DNA of 64,000 nt from the NCBI GenBank assembly GCA_977016875.1, contig CDRNST010000175.1, positions 1,488,001 to 1,552,000 on the forward strand, read 5' to 3'. The notes below the pieces were generated by a model that searched no databases, was not told the DNA's origin, and was given only the letters and a program-made list of their open reading frames with translations. This document shows, one piece after another, positions 17,019-34,467 of this stretch; position 1 is the stretch's first letter; each line of letters opens with the position of its first letter. The translations under genes were made by a program, and so were the position numbers. This stretch comes from Pavona decussata (taxonomy: Eukaryota).

Positions 17019-17084
17019 CTCTTGCATGGATGTGCATCAATAGGGAACTTAAGCACCGACGACGAAACGAGAGGACGACGACGG

Positions 17085-17125
17085 CCGGAAGTCGAATTCT
17101 CACATTTGGGCGTACTGCGCATGTC
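17085..17125 (+). promoter_or_regulatory. Putative promoter module: ETS-type CCGGAAGT, 20-nt spacer, NRF1-like TACTGCGCATGTC
   Basis: Same motifs, spacing and distance from the terminus recur at 33255-33295 (minus) in the second element. Confidence 0.55.
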
Positions 17126-17363
17126 TTTGTTTGAGATTTCGTCGTCCACGTTGCGTCCACGACGGAATTTTTCCAGGAAAGCCGTTCTCTTGAAAACGTA
17201 AGTAGAAGTAGCGTCGTTAGGACTATGTTCAAAGGATTTTGATCTATTTTCACGAAGCTTGGTACCTGCTAAGGTTTTAGATTGCGAGTGGATCGCATTG
17301 GATGAATTTTTTTGCTTCTTTTGCAGGCATATTTCACAAGTATTTATTGAAACTCTTCTCAAT

Positions 17364-18261
17364 ATGGCCGCCTCCCTTTTGCCAGAGGAAGAAACCGAGA
17401 AAACGTAAGCTACAAACAGCTATGTATTTTGGTAGATTTTTCTTTTCGATACAGTGACAGCTTAATACATTTTTCGACCAACTTGGAACTTATTTGTTGT
17501 TTTTTATTGCATCTAGAAGCAAGTACTTCCAGTGGACGACAGATCATGATGTTATTATGTGTAGGGAAGTGCTCGTGAGCGAACCCTACAAATTCAAGCT
17601 AAGAACCCCTGAAAGAGGACAAGCCTGGGAATCCTTAGCTCAGCAGCTCAACAGTATTCATCAGCCGAAGTTCAGAGTAACCGCCAGATCCGTGCGTGAT
17701 CGGTTTTCACTGCTGTCGACAAAGTATGCACAAAAATTAAGAATGGAGGAGAGAGCTTCAGGTATCGAAGTGGAACACACAGAGCTAGAGAAACTGATAG
17801 ATGAAATCTTAGAGCGAGAGAAGGACGCAAAGAGGGAACTAGACTCAAAAGACCGTGAAAAGAAGAGTAAGGCCGACAAGGAAAAGGCTACAGCTGAACA
17901 AGTCAGGAAGCAAGCAATGGAGAGAATGGTTAAGCGAACAGGTGATGACCAGGAGAACAAACAAAGGAAGCCAAAGATCAGGCGAAGCACTGTTGATGCT
18001 ATAGATTACTTGAGAGAGAGATCAGAAAATGAGAGGGAGTATAAAAAAGAAGAATTAGAGATCAAGAAGAGAGAACTTGCTGTGCAAGCTGAAAAGCAAG
18101 ATCAAGCTCAAAAGCAACAACAGGCTATGTTTTCAGCATTAATGGCTCAAATTCAGCAGCAACAACAGCAACAGCAGAATGTGCAAGCAATGCTAGCAGC
18201 ACAACAGCAGCAGCAAACCAAGCTTCTGATGGCATTCATGGAGAATAACAAGAAACAGTGA
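17364..18261 (+). CDS. Myb/SANT-like DNA-binding accessory protein of Pangu element 1 (exons 17364-17404, 17517-18261; 261 aa)
   Basis: GT-AG phase-2 intron joins [14 protein letters not shown] to [11 protein letters not shown]...RGQAWESLA...SVRDRF...ASG, followed by a charged coiled coil and a Gln-rich tail; no stops. Confidence 0.85.
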
Positions 18262-18632
18262 ACTTGTTAAGCTTAGTTCAAGACTGTGAGTAATACTCTC
18301 TCATAAGATCAGTTTAAAAGCAATTTGCAGTTGAATTTGTTATGAACCCTCCCAGTTACTAGAGGTGTCTCTTAAGTTTTACATTTTACATTTGAATTGT
18401 TATAGAACTGAACCAGAAAAATGGTTGTTGCACGGTGTAGTGTAACCAGTGTAGAATTTAATGTTTTCATGGCTTCTAAACTTCACACAAATGTCAGCCG
18501 TACTTCCTATTGCTTATTTTGCAATTCTCTAGTGCATGCAGATTGTTGTGTTTTGAGTTTTTCATGAATAAACTGTGTTTATTATATTTGGAATGGTTGT
18601 GTTTGTGCTTTTTATTCAGTTATTAACCTTAA

Positions 18633-18833
18633 CCCTTTGAGCCCTAATTTCAAAGAACAAATTCTCCTATCTTGTCCTCATACTTTTCTTATAAAAGTAC
18701 TAGGGAAAAGTTATTAAAATACGAAAATTAACCTTGGGTGATCAGATCCTTAACTCTCATGACCTCAGGGGTTGAATAAGCATTGATATTACAAGGAGAA
18801 ATTTGATACGGATTACTGTTAGGGCTTAAAGGG
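18633..18833. mobile_element. piggyBac-type MITE inside Pangu element 1
   Basis: TTAA on both sides; TIR ccctttgagccctaa / ccctttaagccctaa (14/15). Confidence 0.85.
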
Positions 18834-19018
18834 TTAATTAAGTAAAAAAGGAGAAAGAAGATTCTTTAATGGATTTTTCAGTTCTGTTTTATTTTTACTC
18901 TCTAGTAATCAGTCAACCATCACTTCATAAGCATTTTTCTGAACTGCATGTACGTTTGGCTGCACAGCTTTCATATATAAGATATTACAAGCCACAAGTC
19001 GTTGGAACCTGTTCACTC

Positions 19019-20562
19019 CTAAGCAAAATAGTCTTCAAGTCTTGGTGGTCTGAGATCAAAATAAGTTGAAGTCAGGTTTCCATAGAAACATGTCAATGCA
19101 TTTCGAAGTATGACAGAAACCACATACATTTTCCCAACATTGTTTAAAAAGATTTTCAAATTTTTTTTGAAGTCGTTAAATTTAAAAGAGTTAATAATGT
19201 CACCAAATAGCCATTCGACCGAGCTCCTAACAGCACTCATTTTGCCATTGTATTCCTCCATTTGAGGAGTTAGAACACCATACTTGAAAGGGCCTTGAAG
19301 GTGTATCCTTAGTGGATAACCCGGGTCACCGTACACACAGAGTGGCTGGCCTGCTGGATTAAACGCAAACTGCTCCAAGTCATGAAGCAGCCCTGAGTCA
19401 GCTAGCATGCCTGCGTCATGCTTCCTTCCTTCTAAAACACACACACCAAAAAACATTATTATTAGCTAATTGATAAAATAATTTATAAATAGGAGCTGCA
19501 TTCATGTATATTTTAGTTAGGAAGGAACTGGACAAGGATTAGGGTTTGAGAGTGACTTCATGCACCACATTTTATCACCCATAGGGAGCGAAAATGTCAA
19601 CCACTTTCCTGAGGGTAGGGTGCGGGTGGGGGGCGTGGGGCTTACGTAGGGGAGTATTGGGGACTTGTGGAATGTTTGTGCCCTAGAGGTGGGAGGCTTC
19701 ATAAGATTTTTAATGGAAATAACTTAAAAAGCAACAGGAGCATGCCTTAAAGCATTGCCTCACATCTGGGTGAAGAGTGAAAGGTAAGTGAGGACCCCAC
19801 ATGACAGTTGTTTAATAAACAAAGTAACAAGTACCCTTTGTAAGACACTACCCAGAACAGTCTGTCAATATTTTGTACTTCTTAATTATTTTATAACTTA
19901 CCAATTGGACCATATAAGTTTGCTATCAAACCATTTGGTAGAGCCACGCTTTGAAACTTAAGGGCGTGAACCCGCTTGTGGCCATTGTAAAGAATTCGTT
20001 GGTGCTCTCCAGGCCGTGAAATGGGTCTAACGGTGCCATCTATGAACCCAAAACAGTTGTCCAAGGGAGCTCCCTTAGCTGTTATAGCATCAACGTAGGT
20101 CTGGAGGTTTGCAGGACTAAGAATTTCATGATTCCAGTGCAGTACCTTGTGTCCATGGGTATTGTAAATGTAGTCAAGCATTTGGTTGGTAATCATACTT
20201 AGAACTGGTACAGGTTTAGCAAATCTGTGAATCATATCGCCATACCTACAAGGGTACGACATTCGCTTGAGCAGCATGCATAGGCCTTCAATGCCGTCAC
20301 AAACGGAGCGTTGCTCACAGATTATGGTGTCTGGAATCCGTAGAACCTCTGCCAATGCTCGCACGTCTCGTTTGCGAAAACGAAACTCTGCTACACTTTC
20401 AGATTCATCGATCTCGTCAAGGTCAAAAGGTGCATAAACATCGTACGGAAAATCAGGGTCTCTCGAAGAATAAAGATCATGAAGTATAATAAATTCTTCA
20501 TCATCAATTAAGCCATCATCGTGGCTGATTGCAAGCAAATTGCGAAAGTCTTTGAACGCCAT
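19019..20562 (-). CDS. Harbinger-family (DDE_Tnp_4/HARBI1-like) transposase (exons 20562-19902, 19431-19019; 357 aa)
   Basis: MAFKDFR...FRFRKRD...GFIDGTVRPISRP...YNGHKRVHALKFQ...GPI|EGRKHDAGML...YGDPGY...RSSVEWLFG. D-D-E triad present; GT-AG phase-1 intron; spliced ORF open. Confidence 0.92.
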
Positions 20563-20629
20563 AGACAAGCCAAAACTATCGTGAGTGGAAGTGCCGTTGA
20601 CTCTCCGAAAGGTCGTCTGCTTAACTTTC

Positions 20630-20645
20630 AGTTTTCCCGCCGAAA
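20630..20645 (-). promoter_or_regulatory. E2F-type site (TTTCGGCGGGAAAA) upstream of the transposase
   Basis: Matches TTTTGGCGGGAAA at 25122-25134 in the second element, at a near-identical offset from the terminus. Confidence 0.5.
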
Positions 20646-21300
20646 ACGAAACCCTTGGTCCAGTCCTTCTCGGGTATGAAGCGTCGTCGTCGTCCAATTC
20701 GTCGTCGGTGCTTAAGTTCCCTAATACCTCACATGTTTGCTTTAATATATTTGTGCACTTGACAACATCTTGAATAACGCCTTCTGAAGCAGCTTTCAAA
20801 AGTGTTACACTTTGACTGTCCAAAGGGTGGAACTGTAGAACCAAATAATGTGGTGCCTGCTCAGTGCACAAGCCAAAGAGATGTGGGATTCCCCAGTGGT
20901 CTCCAATACCTGTAATTGCTGCTTCTTCACGAAGCACTTCTCTTTTTTCTGATTTGATGAATCCATTCCTTTTATCTCTTTGGCAACGACTCTGAATTCA
21001 TTGCGATCCAATTTATTGGGTTTTGTGCACTTTCAATAAAGCCCTATGGATTTCTTTAAAAGCAGGAGCCTCTGTTTTCGTGACTGTACTCGTTTCTCCA
21101 GAGCAAACATCGATACGTTTCCGCGGAATTTTTGCGGCCAACATGATCTCCTCTTCCAATTGACTTATCCGCTCGGACTTTAAATTCGATAAGGTTACCG
21201 AATACTTGCTTCTCGACAAAGTATTGGCCACTGGCGATGGATTGTTCGATTTGATGGGTTTCTTTTTTTTGGCTATGGTTCTAGCACTTCCCTTGCGTCT

Positions 21301-22620: not shown

Positions 22621-25200
22621 GTTGCAATAAGAAAGTTTTTCAGGTCGTAGATCCCCAAATGGCAAATAAGGTGCAGATTTGGAATAAAACTATACTACAT
22701 ATAAATTGGCTGCTCAACAAATTTTTCAACCTACTGACTGTAATTGTATATTCAGATTCTGTTTTTTTTTTTCTGACTTACCTATTTTGAGCACTAAACT
22801 TAACAAGTTGTTAGGTTCAACAATTTTTAACTGAATACTTGTTTCACCAGTACAAAAGGATGACCAGCTGAGGCAGCGGAATTCGTCAAGATAGTCATAG
22901 ACCACCATGGCATGTTTTGGAAATGTTATTGCATCTTGTATGCCAGGTTGTTGAAGTAAATATCTGATGTGCTTCTCCCCATCTGTGTATGCCGCTACGA
23001 ACTGCTCATTTTGAACAAATTTTGAGTGGACCTCTTCTTTAAGCTTGGCCTTAGTCTTCCGCAGTTCTTGTACAATGACATTCCTAATGACAGATACAAA
23101 GCAAGGAATTTCTTGTGCTTAAAAAATAACCTGTCATAAATTCAATTTTTTACTAGACTTTTCTCCCTTTTTTCTTCTTGAAAAGAACATAATCCAGTTT
23201 ATAATAAGGTTTTAATGATTTCAGAACTTGTAGTACTGTAAGTTGTAGGCGGCCATTTTCTTGATTTCTGGCAAAGGTTGAGTTTAGTGACCATCTCATG
23301 ATTAATTTTCGGTTTAAAAGGAAGTTCTGTTTGCAGTTCTTAGTTTGGTGTTTTATGTTCACATTGTTTTTGGTTTTCCTTGTCTTGGTAAAAATCATCA
23401 CTTGCTTCTTCATAAGAAGCAGATAGAGTATTTCTAACTTGTACATGTAAGGTTAATAACAGTTGTTGAAAAGGCAAAATGCCAGCGTGGTTTTTTTTTT
23501 TTTTGCATAAGTTAAAAAAATATTTGAGTAATTTGATTATTTTAGTAGTATTTTGTACCAATATGTGCTCATGCATTAAGGAAACAGTTATTATTTTTAT
23601 TTGTTATAATTATTTTATTTATTTATCATACCTGGGAAGAATAGGATTAAGACCAGTTTTCTCCGCCAGTTTGTTTCCCCAATGACCCCTCAAAATTGAA
23701 TTTATACTGGTTCTGGCCAGTGCTGAAGGAGGAAATAATGCCCACGTCAAAGTCGAAAAAGGCTTCGTGATGCTTTTTTACAAATGGTGGCATAAATGTG
23801 TTCTTGACAACTCTACCATCACAACAGTCTAGCATTGCCTCATGCAAGCTTTTCATTTGAAATTACTTCCGGTCACTTCTGTCGTCCACAAATTGCAGGA
23901 ATCGCTGGTCAGGTGTACACATTTTTTGCCTCCAGGCTTTTTTGCAGAGTCCGAGTCAAGGGGCCTTATGGCAGAAGAATGTCCAGAAATGGTGATGTCA
24001 CAAAAAAGGGATGGGAAAGTCCAGTGTAAACTTTTCCTTAATTCATTCAATTCGTCCTAAGCAGCCTCCCTGCCGATCTCACGCGAAACAAGAGGTACAG
24101 ATAACCTTGGCCATTCGGGGTAGGGCAAATACAACCAGTTCCTGGTCGGTCAATTGGCTGGTAAACAGTTCCCGAATCCTGGCACCTCTGTGGTAAGGAC
24201 TCAAAGTTTACGTTAAAAAAATACTTACTGCTTCTTTGCTGTTGACAACAGGCTAAGGGCGGTGATCAGGTAGAAGGAGTAATGTCTTGATAAATTTCCC
24301 TTGGACGCAAATGAATTTTGGCAGGTTTCAAAAGTCACTTTAGCCACTTTTCTTTCCGGAGAAAACATCGTAAACTAATTTAACGGATTTAAAGGCCAAA
24401 ACATCAACAACCATTGTAGCCAATTGACATACAAACACTTTTCAGAATTGTAGAGAAAAGCAATCTTTGGGCTTTCTATTTATTTAGTATGGAGAAATCC
24501 GCAGTTTTCGAGACCTATCGGCAGCGCGCTTGCCAAACAGGCTTTTTCGCTGTGCCTTTTTTTTTTTTAACGATGTGGGACATTAATCATTAATGGAAGC
24601 TCGGTAGGAGTGAAACACTTTCCAGAATGGCAGGGAAAAGTAATCTATAGGGCTTTATTTCTTTCTATTAAGTTTGGAGAAATCCGCAGTTTTCGAGACC
24701 TATCGAGTGGCCATATGCAATTAAAAAATCGACGAGTTCGTTATTTAGTCCATAATGAAGTGTCATTTGCTAAAGACGTATGAAAACCAGTTTTGACTGC
24801 CGCGCGGACTGCGGGCTCAATCCCCGTATGGCAGGAGGCACTTCAATTTGATCATAATGCATCCATCTTACTTGTACTCTCTGCTGCTTCTCTGTTTTCC
24901 GCTTCTTGTTTGAACAGCTGTTGTCACTACTGCCCTGCCTCATTCGGTTCAGGAGACCAGATAGCCGGTTGACTGTTCGCAATGAAAATGTAGTAGGTGG
25001 TGATCTCGCCAAGGCCAATCCTTCTTCACTATGGCCACTTATTAGGGACCTTAAGCAACTCACGACGACGGCCCAGTGGACGCCGGCCGTGAGTGTGGGA
25101 AACTAGGTCGAGGTCGACGTCTTTTGGCGGGAAACACAAGATTAAGCAAACAAGAGGACGACGGCATTTTTTTCTGAGGTCTTTGCCACTTCAGTTAGAT

Positions 25201-26778
25201 ATGGCATCCCTGAGAGATACTCGAGAAGCTTTATTGTTTGCATACTCTGAAGATTGGTTGGATGACGTAGAATTTCTCGTTTTGAATGAGCTCAACACTT
25301 CTAAAAACCTCGACTTTCCCTATGATTTGTACGACCAGTTTGATTTTGACGATATCGACGAAGCCGAGTGTATTGCCGAATTTCGTTTTGAGAAGCGACA
25401 CATTCTGCTACTAGAAGAGGTGCTACAGATCCCGCCTTTAATGAAATGCAACCAGAGATCGGTTTTCACCGGAACGGAAGGACTCTGTATGCTTCTTAAA
25501 AGGCTTGCTTACCCTTGTAGATATTCAGACCTCATTCATCGTTTTGGCAGACCAGTTCCTGTCCTAAGCATGATTACCAATGAAGTCATAGACCACATAT
25601 ACGGGACCCACCATCACAAGATAACTAACTGGAATGATGATATTCTGAACCCTATTGCCTTGCAAACGTACGCAGATGCAATTTCAGCAAAAGGAGCACC
25701 TTTAGCAAACTGCTTTGGATTTGTAGATGGGACAGTGAGACCAATTTCTAAACCCGGAGAACGCCAACGAGTGATGTATAACGGTCACAAGAGAGTTCAT
25801 GGCATCATAATTTTTTTTTTCTTTTAAGGTATGTTTTTGCGAAATTGCAGTAAGTCCATCTCAAGGAGAAATAAAAAATTCCTTGACATTCAAAGGCTTT
25901 CTAACAGCATTTCTTTCAAAGTCATCTCCATCAGTTTTCACCTCATCAACCCATTTTTATTTGCCTGCAGAGAAGCAAGGTTTCTTTGAAAACAGAGGGA
26001 CAATAACATTGATTTTCCTGAAACGGTTTTATGTTTGCTTGTACCTTTAGATAGTACTTGTGAGAATCCCAGGTATATAGTTAGTGTCCCAAATGCAATA
26101 TGAGAACAAAGTTCCTGTCCCCTAGCTGGATTTTATGTGGGAAGAGGAAGGGGGGGGGGGGGGGGGGTTAAGCCTACATGCAGCAGAAAATTCATTGGGA
26201 GAAATAGCACTACCTGATAACCTCCCCAGTCAGTGGATCCCAATGGCCTATGGGGGTTTGAACACACCCACTGCACCCTCCTACTGATAGGCAACATCAT
26301 TACATTTGGAAAAGCATTAATTAAGTGCAAATATTTTGTTCTTCCATGTCCATATCCACTGTGAAGAAGGAAGAAAGCATGATGCAAGCATGTTGACAGA
26401 ATCTGGGCTTTTGAGGCAACTACAACAGAATGCACTGTCACCTGCTGGCCAGCCTATGTGTATCTATGGGGACCCTGCATACCCACTGAGGGTACATTTG
26501 CAGGGTCCATTCAAGAATGCCCACTTAACTCCTCAGATGCAGCAGTTTAATAAGTGTATGAGTGAAGTTAGAGTTTCTGTTGAATGGCTTTTTAATGACA
26601 TCATAAATTATTTTAAGTACATGATTTTAAAAAAAATCTCAAGGTTGGTTTAAGTAGTGTAGGGAAAATGTACTTTGTATCAGCACTTCTTCGCAATGCT
26701 CTGACATGCCTATATGGCAATTCGACATCCAAGTTTTTTGATGTTCAACCTCCAAGGCTGGAAGACTATTTTGCATAA
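25201..26778 (+). pseudogene. Harbinger-family transposase of Pangu element 2, disabled
   Basis: MASLRDTRE...GFVDGTVRPISKP...HKRVHGI, then loss of the end of exon 1 and its donor near 25806. Exon 2 from 26367 (EGRKHDASML...GDPAYP...SVEWLF) has a frameshift near 26620 and ends PRLEDYFA*. Confidence 0.9.
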
Positions 26779-29616
26779 ATTTGAAGACTGAATTCCTGTA
26801 ATGTAAAGTATGTTTAATCAACAACCACTTTCTTCCAACAAGTAACAAGCAAGTAACCAAACTGTAAAGAACAGACCATTAATTTGTTGAGTTAGTAAAC
26901 AGATGAAAAACATCCAAAGTCCCTTGTCATACATCTTCTCTTCCATCTGTCATATAACTGAATATCTTGTTTACAAAAAACACAATTTAAAAACATCTTG
27001 ATTTTGATTTTAAAAAATGTTTGATTCTTGCTTTATAAGAAAACAAACAAGTGCAAAAACCAGATACCCCTAGTAAGTCATAACTTGCAATAAAAAAACT
27101 GTAACTGAACAAATCTCAACCTGCTGAATTTGATCCAGGTGTACTTTTTCTACTTTTTAGCAAACTTTTCCACAATTGCTAACATAGTTTGGTTTTGCTG
27201 CTGACTTTGTTGCATAAAAGCTGCTAACATATCTTGCATCTGCTGTCGTTGATTGACCTGTGGCAGTTGCATCTGTTGCAAAATATTGTTTTGTTGATCT
27301 ACAATTTTCTGCTGCTCAGATCTCCTTTGAGTCAGTTCTTCTTGCTTTATCTTCGTGTCGTTTTCCAATTTCTCTCTCATAAAGTCAAGAGTGTCTGAAC
27401 CACTACGTCTTGCTTTCTTCTTGTGCCCTGAAGCTGTCTCTCCAGTGGCTTCTTTGCGCTTCTTGCTTTGTCCAAGTTTTTCCATAGCTTGAAATTTCAT
27501 TTCTTCTGCATTTGCTTTGTCCTGCAATTCACTCTTTTTACCTGATTCCTCAATTAGATCTAGCTCTACTTGAGCTGCTTTTTCTTTCTCAGCTATCTCC
27601 TCTAAAGCAGCATCAAGTTCGGAAAGTTCTGGCACTTCAATTCCTGAGGCTCTTTCTTCTTCTCTTATTTTTAGTTTAAAGTTCCTCAGCAAAATCTTTG
27701 CTCGGTCTCTGACAGACTTCTGTGAAACTCGGAAACGTGGTGCATGAATAGCATTCAGATGAGTTGCAATAAGGTCCCATGCCTGTCCACTCTCCCTACT
27801 TCTGTTCTTAAATTTATAAGGTTCAACTGCCAACATCTCTCTGGCTAAGAGTACATCGTGTTCTTTTGACCATTTAAATGCTGGCAAGTTCCTAGAATTA
27901 CAGAGAAGAAAAAATTACCTATAATATTTTAACAAATTTAAATGATTTCCAAGGTATTGATTGTTTGAATAGAGTATACCAACAGACTTCAAATCAAGTA
28001 GTCCTCGTGTAAAAGTTTTGGCATAGGATGGGGTACTCTAGGATAAAAGGGGAACATTTTTGGAAAAGCAAATGAATTTACTATATAAATAGGAAATGTT
28101 TCCCCCAAAAAAACAACAACACCAAACAAGCAATGAAAAAGGAAACAAACATCAAATTTGGGGCTTTTTGCTACTAACTGAGTCAACTAATCTCAAATTC
28201 CATCCATTCTCCTTCCCAAACAAAAAAATATGTACAATTATCTCTGTCAACAGCCACAGCTACAATGGGCTACGTTCTGTAAACAAACAGATCACTGTGT
28301 TGCATATCATGGCTCACATTTCAGGGCTTCAATTCCCTTAAAATATAGATAATTTTGTTACTACGTGTTAAAATGATTTGCAATTGAATTATTGAGTCTT
28401 CGTTCGGAGGGGCTTGCAACGATTATCTTCGGGGATCCAAATTAAAGCTAACAGAAATGATATTTACAACCTTCACGACAGCAATAATTCTGCTTAGCAA
28501 GTTCAAAAGGACACATAATCAAACAATTAAATTGGAGAAATTAGTTCTGAGGGATATTCGACAGGTTAAACAGTGGACGGATTGTAGCATGTCAAATTGA
28601 AGGGAAAAAATCTCGCAACACAAATCACCAACTATGTAAAAAGTTTCTCGGAAGTATTCGTGCGCTTAATTTCTTAGAACCTGCCATACCGAAAATACAA
28701 CTTTCATTAAGAGTTTGCACTGAAAAATCCAATTCTAGCTTGAAAGAAAGGGCGCTTTCGCAGCCAAATTTCTTCTAAACGTAATTCAAAATAAAACTCC
28801 AAGAAAAGCCCTTACTTACGTAGCTCTTTCAGATGTTTGTTCACAGGAAGGTATAAAAATATATTATCGGACACTTTTTACCTCTTCGGCTCTATTGAAG
28901 CTCGCGATGGAGAAACAGCCGATTTATTCTTCCTCTAAAATAGTAATAGAGTACTCTTTATAGTCCCAGAAGATAATTGCGTAAAAAGCGTCACATTTCC
29001 CACAAAACTTACTCACAGAGGCTCGATTGGATTGATCGATTATCGGACATGCAAATCTATTATCGGACATGCGAATCTATTATCGGACATATGATACAAC
29101 TATTGTTTGGTGCCCAAATTTGGGAAGTGTGAGGGTCAGAACATCATGTAGGCCTACGTATAATGTCCCGGGACATAACCATGTGTAATATACATAACTT
29201 TACATGACTTATAGATAACTTTACATGACGTACTGACCAGATCAGACAGATCATCAATAATATTTCTATGATATATGTAAGTTTGCTACGTTTATTCTCA
29301 CGTGACAAGGTATTCAAGAACAAATATGTGAGCAAAGAGTTTCTTCTTGTTTATGATACAGACTGAGGGAAAAAGGGGTACTGTATACAATTCTGTTAGT
29401 TTAATATTTCGGAATGCTATTGCTTATGATGACCCAAAACATAAGCTTGCATCAACAACAAAGTTTCTTTGTAACTTAAAGCTACCTGTCAACTGTTCGC
29501 AGTTCAATGTCACTTCTTCTTAAATGATCTGCATGAGGGCCTAATTTTAGTGTAGAAGAACGTAAATTATTTCTTTAATCTAGGAGCAACAAGAGCTTAC
29601 AAATTTTTTTGGTTTT

Positions 29617-32115
29617 TTAATAGTCATTGTGGCTTGGGAAGCCCCGAACTTCACACTCCTCGCAGGTGTAGTCCACGAGTGTGTTGAAAGAATCAAGCAC
29701 TGGCAGATCCGTGCATTGAAAGTGGAACCATCCCCCGCAGTAATCACACTCTACCCATGGGTTTTCTTCTTCGGTGTAGTATTCTTTGCCGCACTTCGCA
29801 CAATGGTACTTTTCCTTTTCCTCTGCGGTCGCCGTCTTCTTTCTCTTTGCACGTGAACCATTCTTCCCCTTCTTTCCCCTATTATTTTTTTGGGCTTCTT
29901 TTGCTTCTTCCTTTCTTTTCTTTTCTTCTGCCTTTGCCTTCATTTTCTCTTTCCTTTCCTCTGCTTTCTTTTTCTTCTCCGCTGCCGTTCTCTCTCTCTC
30001 TTTTCTCTTTTCTTCTTTTTCCTTCTTTTCTTTTTCCTTTCTTTCGTTTTCTGACTGTAACGCAGCTACAAACAATTGGCCTGTTATACAGCTGTTGCTA
30101 GGATTCAGCGCGTTGTTCCCCCGTTTTCTGTTTGCGGTAGTTTTTCTTCTCAGATCTAACATTATGCTGCACAAATCTCCGTCGATATGAACAGATCCAA
30201 ATGGTGTGGAGATGGTGTAAGGCGATGGTTCCGCGCTGGAAGGAGGAGAAGGGAACACTCGAACTTCATCACTTTGGGACATGTTCACGGGCGAAGTGGC
30301 AGCTGGTGCTAATGGTGTGGAGGTGCTGTAAGGCGATGGTTCGCTGGAAGGAGGAGAAGGGAACACGGGGACTTCAGCACTTTGCGACACGTTCACGGGC
30401 GAGGTGGCAGCTGGTGGTACACTCAACATTGTCGGCAGTAGAGGACAGCCCATTTGTAGACAGTCACAAAAGCCGAATCCATCGCAAGTACAGTGGCAGG
30501 CGGACTGGCACGGGCAATTTGCGTTAACCTTGTCTCCTCCGATATCTCTGAACAACTCCCGCCATGTGTCGTACTGGTGGTCGCCGTCTATGTCATAACC
30601 GTTCTGAAATCGCCGTCTGAATCTCTCTCTCTCCGTCCTCCCAATTCTCTTCTCTAACGATGTCAGTGTTTCATAGGCTGCTGATATGCCAGGAGAATTG
30701 GATTGTGTACTTGGCGTACTTGGCCCACTGGGTGTCGATGAGAGAAATGGGTCCCCTTGAAGAAGCGATGGGCGTGGTGGAGTAATGGGCACATCAACCT
30801 CATGCATTAGTGGGAGTTCCATGCAAGGGGAAGCAGGCTCGGTAGCAAAACCATCTTGTCCCACTGTATCATCCTCAGTTGGAGGAGAGCTTTCACTAGT
30901 GGGTGGATCTGAATTCCTGATGGCGTCTCGGCTGGATGAACCAATGGTTGGCGCTAGCTTGGAGTAGTCAAACTGGGTCGGATCAAACGGATAGATACCA
31001 GCCCGTCTAAATCCTCCCCGGATGACTTGTGGAGTATTACTTGAGTGCCAGGCAACGTTAAAGATCTTAGCGAAATTACGCTGATTGACCACCATTGAAG
31101 CAATATGGTTGAAAGCTGCGCACGCCCTCACCCATCCCCGTTTCAGCGGGCCAAACAAGGACAAGTCCAGAGGCTGGAGAAGATGAGATGAATGAGCAGG
31201 CAAGCAGAAGACAAGGATTTTGTTTCTGATTGCTGTTTCGATTACGTCTTGCGTGACGTTCGCTTTGTGGCCATCAACCAAAAGCAAGACAGGCCGTTCC
31301 TCGGGAATATGTTTCAGAAACAGTTCATTGAACCACTTTAAATAGAGGTCCTTATCTATCCAGCCAGACTTCTGTGCTGTAAATAAGGTGTTTGTCGGTG
31401 CGCCCTCTTGAACCCCATTTGGTACGCGCCCACTTTGACTCTTATAGATCAACATGGGAGGTAGGCTATTCCCTGCAGCAGATGAGCAGGCCAGCACTGT
31501 CACTTTTTCATGCTGCCCTTTGGAAACGCGTGGAATGTGTTTTGCACCTCTTGCTGCGGCCACCGTCTTATTTATACTGTCAAACTCAAAGCCGCTCTCG
31601 TCACAGTTGAAAATCAAGTGCGGTTTCTCCAATAATGACCCATAAGGATTATCTGTGAGGGTTTCATAAAGGCGCTCGTAGAATTGCTCTATCGTTGTCC
31701 TGTTTACTAACGTGCGGACGATTCCAAAGTTTTGCGTCGCTCGCATAGAAATTTCAGGATTTCGCTTTAGAAAGTGTCGCCACCACATCTCTGAAAGGCA
31801 CCCCTCTACCTTTTTTCCTCGCTTAACGGCGATCTGCGTGGCCATGTACAAAATTATTTCTTTACTTTTACCATAGCCTTGCTTACTGACGTCAATCAGA
31901 TAACTGGCAAGTTTCTTTTCGTCCTCCGCGCTTAACATTCGTTCTGGGCCACTTAGAGCTCCGTGTTCAGTTCGCCCACTTATTCTATCCCCAAGAGTTG
32001 ATTTAGGGACATTCCAATCTGCAGCCGCTTTTCTTACGGAATCTCCATTTCTTACGGCCTCCATGGCAGCAACCATGTTTTCTTCCGTCCAAGTTTTTCT
32101 TTTTTTTGGTGGCAT
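29617..32115 (-). CDS. pogo-family transposase, 832 aa from MPPKKRKTW: HTH-psq, CENP-B HTH, DDE_1, Cys cluster, K/E coil, C-terminal PHD finger
   Basis: Uninterrupted ORF; FNCDESG, LLVDGH, QPLD (35 residues between the last two Asp); CAKC..WVECDYCGGWFHFQC..YTCEEC. Confidence 0.92.
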   Translation of the reverse strand: MPPKKRKTWTEENMVAAMEAVRNGDSVRKAAADWNVPKSTLGDRISGRTEHGALSGPERMLSAEDEKKLASYLIDVSKQGYGKSKEIILYMATQIAVKRGKKVEGCLSEMWWRHFLKRNPEISMRATQNFGIVRTLVNRTTIEQFYERLYETLTDNPYGSLLEKPHLIFNCDESGFEFDSINKTVAAARGAKHIPRVSKGQHEKVTVLACSSAAGNSLPPMLIYKSQSGRVPNGVQEGAPTNTLFTAQKSGWIDKDLYLKWFNELFLKHIPEERPVLLLVDGHKANVTQDVIETAIRNKILVFCLPAHSSHLLQPLDLSLFGPLKRGWVRACAAFNHIASMVVNQRNFAKIFNVAWHSSNTPQVIRGGFRRAGIYPFDPTQFDYSKLAPTIGSSSRDAIRNSDPPTSESSPPTEDDTVGQDGFATEPASPCMELPLMHEVDVPITPPRPSLLQGDPFLSSTPSGPSTPSTQSNSPGISAAYETLTSLEKRIGRTERERFRRRFQNGYDIDGDHQYDTWRELFRDIGGDKVNANCPCQSACHCTCDGFGFCDCLQMGCPLLPTMLSVPPAATSPVNVSQSAEVPVFPSPPSSEPSPYSTSTPLAPAATSPVNMSQSDEVRVFPSPPSSAEPSPYTISTPFGSVHIDGDLCSIMLDLRRKTTANRKRGNNALNPSNSCITGQLFVAALQSENERKEKEKKEKEEKRKERERTAAEKKKKAEERKEKMKAKAEEKKRKEEAKEAQKNNRGKKGKNGSRAKRKKTATAEEKEKYHCAKCGKEYYTEEENPWVECDYCGGWFHFQCTDLPVLDSFNTLVDYTCEECEVRGFPSHNDY
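30198..30418 (-). repeat. In-frame tandem duplication (~36-37 codons x2) within the pogo transposase
   Basis: PAATSPVNVSQSAEVPVFPSPPSSEPSPYSTSTP / PAATSPVNMSQSDEVRVFPSPPSSAEPSPYTISTP. Confidence 0.9.
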
Positions 32116-34467
32116 TTTGACCCTAAGGATGTGGATGATTATCTTAGAAATGCTCTTAAGTACATTTCCTTTACTTCTTTTACTCACCGATTGACCCACC
32201 CAGGAACCCCACCCTATTCCTGGTAGTGCCCCACCCCTTTTCTTACAGATCCACTTCCTTTCACCGAATAGTATGTTTTTTAAAATTGTAAAATTACTAC
32301 ATTTTACCACTAGAACGTCAGACATAGTATTGTAAACCGTTTCCTGGAATATCCCCTTTTGTCAATGAAAGACATGGGTCGGTATTAAAAAAAACTCAGA
32401 AAATCACGTAAAATTATAAATTGAGGAGCTAATTTCTCATTTCCCCTTGTTAACTGATCAAGGACCACATAAATAAGCCAAAATATAGCATTTTAAGCTT
32501 AACTTACCTGGATATTTGGAAATCCTGGACAAAATTCCCGCCAGACACATTGCGCACGCAAATCCTGTTTCGGTATGAAAGCTGGCCGTCCGATAATAGA
32601 TCGCAGGCGTATACAGGCAAAAACACCTTTAACCAGCGGTTGATCGCAAAAAACAGCCCCAATGGACTCATGGGAAAGAAAATGGAGGACAAGGTTGCGA
32701 TCGGCGAGTTTTCAGGGCAATCTCAGCAGTTTTGCGCCCGTTATTGAAATTTTTTTTTTTGTCGAGGGAAATTTGTTGGGAAAATCAAGCGCCATGGTTG
32801 TTGAAGGTAAGAAAACTAATTTCATTTTATATTTCCGCGGATTTACGACAGACAACTTGGTACACGCGGCGATTACATGCCATCTAGTCAAAGTGTTGGT
32901 GTTTCATAACCTTTTTTTTATTATTTTAGTGGAAAACAAAGTTTTTCCGTTTTTGTCCGATAATGTGTGGCGTCCGATAATATATATTTATACCTGAAGC
33001 CATCTTTGATTCCAGCTAGTTCACTGAAAACGAGAAAGTTCGTAAATGAATAAACAGCACATTCTCGTCAAATAGCACCACAAAATTTTTCTTCGATCTT
33101 AGAAAGCCCAAAACAACACTCACATGTGATTTGTTTCCTTAAAATGAGCAGGGAAAGAGAAAATAAGGAAATAAATGCTCACCTTCTGACGACGCCTTCA
33201 AAACCATGTGTCGCCCGACGTCGAGAGCTGAACGACGACTCAAGTTTTATCGCTGACATGCGCGGTAGCTGCAAATATTGCACTTTTACTTCCGGTCGCC
33301 CAATTTGGCGTCGTCGTCGTGAGTTGCGTAATGTCCCTATTATGTTGGCTGGCAGACGACGTTATTCACTAGAATTGGAACATCGCAGTCCTCCTGCACA
33401 GTTTCTACTTTGGCACGTTTCGTAGCTTAGTCCTTCTCCAAAGAATCACGATGCTCCATTGATTGACTGTCCTTTAGAGCTGCTCTCTCGTTGGAGGTTC
33501 CCAACAACCGTCCAGATGGAGGGGAGCTTATAGTCGTACTGTGTTTGCTCTCAAAAGCAGGTGTAAGTAAATTAGCCTCATCATCTCAGTCGTTGACATA
33601 GTGAAATTCAGGCTCTCTCTTCTTTACCTTTTAGGTCTTGACAGGTTCATTGAAATAATAGCTTGGATATTGCAAGCTCAATTGAAGCCTTCAAAGCTAC
33701 AAAGCACGTGGTTCAACTTAAACGAAAACACAGAATGAAAATTCATGAACCTTTCGCTTCCTCTACCCCAAAATATACTCCACTTTATAAACATCTGTTC
33801 TTGATGTTCTTTTGACCGGTGGACACAAAGCTTTTTGCTCGTCTACAGTGGAAAAGCCTTGCAACCTTTTGTAAAAACCGTTCGCGTGACGGGACGAAGT
33901 GTTGAAAAAATTCAGGGTCAACCGCGTTTAGTCTGTGAGGAGACAAATACCGAAAGTCTAAAATTAGCGAATCACGGTTTGAGTAGTACAATAGGTTAGG
34001 TTGTTTAGACGTCTGTTTAGACTAGAACCCAGACTCCTTGTTGTGGTTGTCACAAAGGAATGGAATATTCTGTGAACCACCTGGAAACTTTGTCTTATTG
34101 TTGATCCTCAGCCACTACTTGGAGGTTTTTCAGGACATTTGTATGGGTTGGAGTACAAACACTATACACGGCATGGATTTCTTTACCACTAACTCCACCC
34201 CAGAATGAATCCATTCCTTCTTTTAGTTCAGTGATACATGTAAAGGGCTTGTAAATACGTTCTGTCTCAGATACATGTAGAAGAATTTTCTTGGTGTTTG
34301 AGGTACTTGGACAGCTGTTACACCGTAATCACAGAGAATCTGTATCACATCTTCAGCTGAAAAAGGTTGCACACCAAGCAGGGCTTGTTGAAGGATTTTA
34401 CGTTCCTTTTCATGAAAGGATTGGAATAAAAAATTACTGTGACACCTGTCCGACCACGGCTTGCAGT

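Follow-up and report, generated by a model that had tools for sequence, protein, structure and literature searches.

To our knowledge, a few model elements apart, little has been established about how DNA transposons confine their activity to the cells that carry heritable copies, or to the stages of the cell cycle that yield a net gain. Two two-gene DNA transposons that lie side by side in a 64,000-nt stretch of the Pavona decussata genome (G000:C175:1488001-1552000, referred to here as the window) raise this question in a concrete form. Ahead of each transposase gene stands a short word that resembles a binding site for host E2F/DP. The original prediction read these words as conserved E2F-type sites that could tie transposition to the cell cycle, and assigned the partner gene at the other end of each element to a separate, constitutive promoter. 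Are the words maintained as host-factor sites, and what would such sites do for the element?

Both transposons have a clear anatomy. Element 1 is complete and runs along the minus strand at 17042-20722, with termini AGGGAACTTAAGCA and an AAT target duplication (20723-20725 and 17039-17041). Its transposase-side TIR (AGGGAACTTAAGCA) occupies 20709-20722 on the minus strand, and its transposase is encoded on the same strand by an exon 1 that extends from the ATG at 20562 to about 19945 and an exon 2 ORF at 19019-19456; the partner ORF is on the plus strand (17494-18261). Element 2 spans 25044-33338 on the plus strand, is interrupted by a nested pogo transposon (28849-32995) and has termini AGGGACCTTAAGCA with an ATT duplication (25041-25043 and 33339-33341). 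The transposase-side TIR (AGGGACCTTAAGCA) lies at 25044-25057 (plus strand), the transposase starts at the ATG at 25201 and continues in a second-exon ORF at 26336-26653 (plus strand), and the partner ORF is at 27150-27887 on the minus strand. The two-exon transposase of each element has a Pfam match to DDE_Tnp_4 (in exon 2 for element 1). The partner ORFs, convergent with the transposase genes, have no Pfam match in either element.

AAT or ATT also flanks other genomic copies, which gives a 5'-ANT-3' duplication, and the element termini read AGGGAAC and AGGGACC, an AG/GG start. Han et al. (2015, PMC4482050) define the Pangu group of the PHIS (PIF/Harbinger-ISL2EU-Spy) superfamily by a 5'-ANT-3' TSD and AG/GG termini; its members are about 3.5 kb long, have one ORF for a DDE transposase and another in which no domain is known, and had been reported from one anthozoan and one hydrozoan. 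On sequence criteria (ANT duplications, AG/GG termini and coding layout), both elements are Pangu transposons as defined in that source. Their nearest named protein relatives come from Montipora and Acropora. The two TIRs of element 2 (25044-25070 and 33312-33338) differ from each other in the key word, which reads TTAAGCA on the transposase side but TTACGCA on the partner side.

The E2F-type site of element 1, TTTTCGGCGGGAAAAC, lies at 20631-20646 on the minus strand and has its core, GGCGGGAAA, at 20633-20641. That of element 2, TTTTGGCGGGAAAC, lies at 25122-25135 on the plus strand and has the same core at 25126-25134. The features described for these sites in the original prediction were all recovered. 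Counted from the GGG of the terminus, the core begins at nt 81 in element 1 and nt 82 in element 2 (nt 82 and 83 from the true terminus, the A of AGGG that adjoins AAT or ATT). The bases in front of it are TTTTC in the first element and TTTT in the second, in keeping with the reported TTT(C/T), and a second TTAAGCA follows in both (20618-20624, minus strand; 25142-25148, plus strand). By the same GGG count, the ATGs (20562, minus; 25201, plus) lie 160 and 157 nt in. The core fits the E2F consensus (TTTSSCGC or the longer TTTSSCGSSAAA), as had been proposed, and the longer form is matched at 12 of 12 positions in element 2 and 11 of 12 in element 1, where the site has one extra base (TTTCGGCGGG). 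Six near-identical genomic copies of element 1 carry the same word at the same place.

The window itself holds three GGCGGGAAA matches where 0.38 would be expected, a count that 2 of 100 shuffles also reach. This excess is weak taken alone. Two of the three matches occupy homologous places in the two elements, and the context of the third (43179) is unrelated; having no Pangu features, the third match was set aside as a Pangu-linked site. The main support for the word comes from a survey across families and not from the window count.

For this survey, the 602-Mb genome was searched with transposase exon 1, exons being taken one by one and not as a joined spliced protein, and at least 150 matches at 44-100% identity were found. 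We collected 118 loci, of which 115 could be oriented on their ATG, and grouped their 220-nt upstream regions into 38 families at 80% identity. TTTSSCGC, on either strand within 200 nt before the ATG, is present in 19 of the 38 families, compared with 2.0 in dinucleotide-preserving shuffles. When GGCGGGAA is admitted as well, this strict E2F word is found in 24 families against 2.35 expected (shuffle maximum, 9), counts that are partly non-independent because the families share ancestry. The comparison with shuffled controls suggested alongside the original prediction thus came out in its favour: the word is position-locked and kept far beyond two copies. Neither the 130 nt flanking the element on the outside nor the first 150 nt of coding sequence holds a strict E2F word in any of the 38 families. 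Matches to TTTSSCGSSAAA at 11 or more of the 12 positions occur in 12 families (0.21 expected) and perfect matches in four (about 0 expected), and equal control windows elsewhere in the same leaders hold no match of ten or more. Where both copies of the terminal word can be anchored, a gap of 7-10 nt separates the end of the best 12-mer from the internal terminal-type word, and a second anchoring gave this gap in 23 of 26 families.

An unbiased ranking of 8-mers by the number of families that contain them leads to the same place. GCGGGAAA is found in 11 families, GGCGGGAA in 10, and CGCCAAAA and CGGGAAAA in 9 each, so that the E2F words come just behind the terminal word CTTAAGCA (13 families) and level with the terminal repeat AGGGACCT (10 families). 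This ranking indicates that the word was not cherry-picked. The word precedes the ATG by 60-110 nt and is bracketed by the terminal repeat and the internal word, in a layout that is common to most of the families: the terminus TAGGGAMC-TTAAGCA, CGACG-type repeats, a block of the form GACTGGG..GAG.ACGYCGT, the E2F-type word, an A/T-rich spacer of 7-10 nt, the internal copy of the terminal word, a leader of 30-110 nt and the ATG. About four families with intact ends are without a good site (L042, L092, L107 and the decayed L076). Across the genome, GGCGGGAAA followed at 5-12 nt by TTAAGC occurs 47 times, compared with 13 for the reversed control, and several families are more numerous than in our sample, with 11 copies carrying AAAAATAAAAAC spacers and 10 carrying AAAAAGAAAC.

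The word extends to other anthozoans. Both copies examined from the sea anemone Actinostola carry the module, one as TTTTCGGCGGGAAA and the other as CCTTGGCGGGAAGG, and a sea-anemone relative (L119) has the word of element 1 at the place it occupies in element 1. One family is present in several coral-associated assemblies, with TTTTAGGCGGGAAAA at different insertion sites and one copy decayed at CpG. An element from the jellyfish Rhopilema keeps the terminal and internal words and has no canonical E2F word; no E2F word was found in an element from the weevil Sitophilus or in three distant Pangu relatives. Judged by these comparisons, the word is conserved at a fixed place in about 30 diverged families of corals and sea anemones, and the site is, in this sample, a trait of the anthozoan Pangu radiation and not of Pangu overall.

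Could such conservation arise without any function, because the word was handed down by a shared ancestor or because chance produced it in subterminal sequence rich in CG? The families do all have a single ancestor, and CGACG-type repeats abound in the region. We nevertheless consider this explanation highly improbable. A chance origin is ruled out by the shuffles (24 families observed, 2.35 expected) together with the flank and coding controls. Simple inheritance is countered by the state of the surrounding sequence: the leader around the conserved blocks has no similarity between families, whereas the word is still kept, as widely as the terminal repeat. It is countered also by the way in which the word varies. 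The forms found among families include TTTTCGGCGGGAAAA and TTTTGGCGGGAAA, TTTGGCGCGCAAA and TTGGCGCGAAA, TTTGGCGCCAAA, and GCGCGGGAAAA, as well as the flipped forms TTCCCGCCAAAA, TTTCCCGCCAAA and CCCGCCAAA. Their core types (GGCGGG, CGCGGG, GGCGCG, GGCGCC and CCCGCC) all fall within the E2F consensus. On the family protein tree, the core type switches at least 11 times, including within clades that have 87-94% SH-aLRT support, on a tree that is built from short sequences and weakly resolved (12 of 31 inner branches reach 80%). Repeated switching inside a consensus speaks against passive descent. An alignment of 28 best sites, which is partly circular because the sites were chosen by score and which serves as an illustration, has a fixed central CG, four S positions that are nearly always G or C in about equal mixes, and a preserved A-run.

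If the word is functional, the first question is whether it serves the transposition reaction or the host transcription machinery. A probable subterminal word of the former kind is present in the same leaders. The internal TTAAGCA lies 91 nt after its terminal copy in element 1 (20618-20624, minus strand), 8 nt beyond the E2F 12-mer, and also 91 nt after it in element 2 (25142-25148, plus strand); in about 25 families the spacing is 90-93 nt, and the internal word is confined to the transposase end. Internal and terminal words change in step across families (TTAAGCA with TTAAGCA, TTTAGCA with TTTAGCA, TTACGAA with TTACGAG, and TTAAGAT with TTAAGTT). Given this co-variation with the terminal-repeat word, the internal TTAAGCA-type word probably provides the transposase with a second binding site. 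A further block adjoins the E2F-type word on its upstream side; in element 1 it reads GGACTGG...GGGTTTCGT (20647-20668, minus strand), and its family consensus is GACTGGG..GAG.ACGYCGT. It is nearly as widely kept in families as the word. A different host factor or a protein of the element might bind it, or it might be a cis-element for transposition.

By analogy, the E2F-type word might itself be a subterminal cis-element that is bound by the transposase or the partner protein, its likeness to E2F sites being a coincidence. Its position invites this reading, lying as it does between two copies of the terminal word, within a conserved subterminal block and at a constant distance (7-10 nt) from the internal word. 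The behaviour of the word across families makes it quite unlikely. The E2F-type word, unlike the internal word, has no coupling to the terminal-word class. Its G/C swaps, its use in both orientations and its relocation all stay within the consensus of a host factor; in the TTACG-type families (L050 and L108) and in L066, E2F words are found downstream of the internal word, kept but differently placed. Distant Pangu elements, moreover, transpose without the word.

The opposite ends of the elements bear on the same point. Asymmetric subterminal sites are common in DNA transposons, and a word present at one end would be in line with a cis-element of that usual kind. Against this, no E2F word is present at the partner ends of the two window elements, the two that were compared. 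Those ends carry a different pair of motifs: in element 1, CCGGAAGT at nt 44 and GCGCATG at nt 76 (17085-17123, plus strand), and in element 2 the same two motifs at the same element positions (about 33255-33295, minus strand). The transposase ends of the 38 families contain 0 matches to CCGGAAGT and 1 to GCGCATG. The two-promoter arrangement that had been proposed for opposite ends therefore stands as a difference in motif content in the two window elements, with the E2F word at one end and CCGGAAGT and GCGCATG at the other; the regulatory meaning attached to it is a separate matter, to which we return below.

We then considered which host factor the word would serve. Host promoters active at G1/S (those of TK, PCNA, DHFR and CDC6) have TTTSSCGC-type words close upstream, in either orientation, and many have them in pairs. 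The Pangu sites resemble these in sequence, in their nearness to the gene and in occurring in either orientation, and differ in that the elements usually have a single site where many host promoters have two. The coral genome provides its own examples. At the thymidine kinase gene of the host, TTTCGGCGCGAA and TTTGGCGCC lie a short way ahead of the likely ATG. In the 3.3 kb around PCNA, the sole E2F words are GCGGGAAC and TTTCCCGCC, which stand together 1.3 kb upstream and precede an apparent 5'-UTR intron, at the likely upstream promoter. In these two genes, which make up the host comparison, the words are the same as those of the elements, which is supportive and falls short of a test. E2F_TDP domains are encoded at no fewer than four loci of the same genome (Pfam, over the cut-off).

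The case for E2F is a match to a consensus, and short GC-rich words are bound by several families of factors. Another host factor that favours a CG-centred GC core with an A-run might use the site, or the word might be a generic CpG-type core-promoter feature, and expression of the transposase need not then track the cell cycle. A related possibility comes from the CDE/CHR elements of G2/M genes (DREAM/MuvB), in which a GGCGG-type word is likewise followed by an A/T-rich stretch. The CDE/CHR reading was rejected, because the CHR hexamer (TTYGAA-type) expected about 4 nt downstream is not enriched (3 of 26 versus 1.8, P about 0.27); the lack of this partner element also leaves some room for a factor outside the cell-cycle programme. 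Three observations nonetheless render a different factor unlikely. The variants GGCGGGAAA, GCGCGAAA, TTTGGCGCCAAA and TTCCCGCCAAAA correspond to the classical E2F set, these variants are incompatible with an Sp1-type GGGGCGGGG site, and the same words stand at the host TK and PCNA genes.

The reading to which we incline, with confidence a little above even, is that the word is a selectively maintained element of the proximal promoter, bound by host E2F/DP, that couples transcription of the transposase to proliferating cells and allows its repression in resting cells. According to this model, host E2F proteins would bind the candidate word ahead of the Pangu transposase coding sequence, in its promoter or 5' leader. 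Transcription of the transposase would then follow the host proliferation programme, with the gene active in stem, germ-lineage and embryonic cells that are cycling, and kept repressed by Rb/DREAM-type complexes where cells are at rest. For the element, the benefit could take either of two forms. Transposition during or after replication might add copies; alternatively, in animals whose germline is not set aside early, expression might be directed to the cycling cells of the stem and germ lineage. S-phase gating, which the original prediction put forward, is one possible rationale, and the targeting of proliferating stem or germ-lineage cells fits equally well. E2F binding, promoter function, dependence on the cell cycle or proliferation, and the copy-gain benefit are all points that we infer from the conservation and consensus match described above.

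A broader proposal concerns both ends of the element. The partner gene would draw on a different set of motifs at its own end, namely ETS and NRF1-like words. It is possible, but in our view somewhat doubtful, that anthozoan Pangu elements have long kept a split promoter logic of this kind, with an E2F-dependent promoter for the catalytic transposase and an ETS/NRF1-type housekeeping promoter for the DNA-binding partner, so that the active complex would form in cycling cells only, whether stem, germ-lineage or embryonic.

Transcript data touch on these ideas at two points. A Logan contig from another coral (SRR34027909_38436, L121) is a spliced transcript that encodes a full-length, 357-aa transposase of the element-1 family. 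Its site is mutated (GGAGGG), and it starts 100 nt outside the element, a start that points to read-through and not to internal initiation; the contig would seem to derive from a decayed copy transcribed by read-through. Transcript contigs from the weevil start at or near the terminus.

E2F words have been described in DNA transposons before. As relayed in PMC5950925 and PMC12595863, Henaff et al. (2014, Plant J 77:852) described DNA transposons of Brassicaceae, including PIF/Harbinger-type elements, that carry the E2F words TTSSCGSSAA and are bound by E2F in vivo. The likeness to the coral elements is evident, both being DNA transposons with E2F-consensus words inside them, and PIF/Harbinger belonging to the superfamily of Pangu. 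The Brassicaceae sites, as those sources present them, belong to MITEs, which are non-autonomous, and are discussed as having been amplified, with host regulation perhaps rewired or diluted as a result. The coral word, a candidate E2F site, has by contrast a fixed place before the transposase gene of autonomous elements in about 30 diverged animal families. Fixed placement and conservation across about 30 families point to a role for the element itself. The Pangu description (PMC4482050), in its parts on termini, TSDs and ORFs, mentions no internal promoter motifs. Within the open-access literature, we found no position-locked E2F-type site that precedes the transposase gene of an autonomous element and is conserved in tens of families, and the work found there on E2F in transposase promoters consists of the plant MITE studies, together with unrelated ATAC-seq papers. 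Transposon promoters built from host transcription-factor sites would thus be the kind of feature already known, and what appears to be new here is a position-locked, family-wide E2F-type site.

The element offers a compact object for study: a single 12-mer with CG at its centre, whose place in the 160-nt leader is known, with dozens of natural variants and with natural negative controls in the families and taxa that lack the site. Should E2F bind it, the activity of coral and anemone transposons could be read directly from the host proliferation programme, and each insertion would scatter a proliferation-responsive site in the genome, as has been shown for the plant MITEs. The split promoter logic, if true, would be the first conserved control circuit wired to the host cell cycle to be described for a eukaryotic cut-and-paste transposon.

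The nested pogo had been cited as a third instance of the motif. An E2F-type word (TGGCGGGAATTTT / TGGCGGGAA) is indeed present at 32535-32543 on the minus strand, about 210 nt before the pogo ORF, and was dropped as extra support for the Pangu sites. At least seven genomic copies of this pogo are near-identical, a family without diverged copies, and its word is for that reason uninformative on conservation. The ORF encodes 902 aa with DDE_1, HTH_psq and PHD domains, and the word sits just before CAG/gtaagt, a likely splice donor, which suggests a short non-coding first exon. Elsewhere in the window, a 420-aa ORF at 40870-42132 (minus strand) resembles a reverse-transcriptase fragment of a non-LTR retrotransposon.
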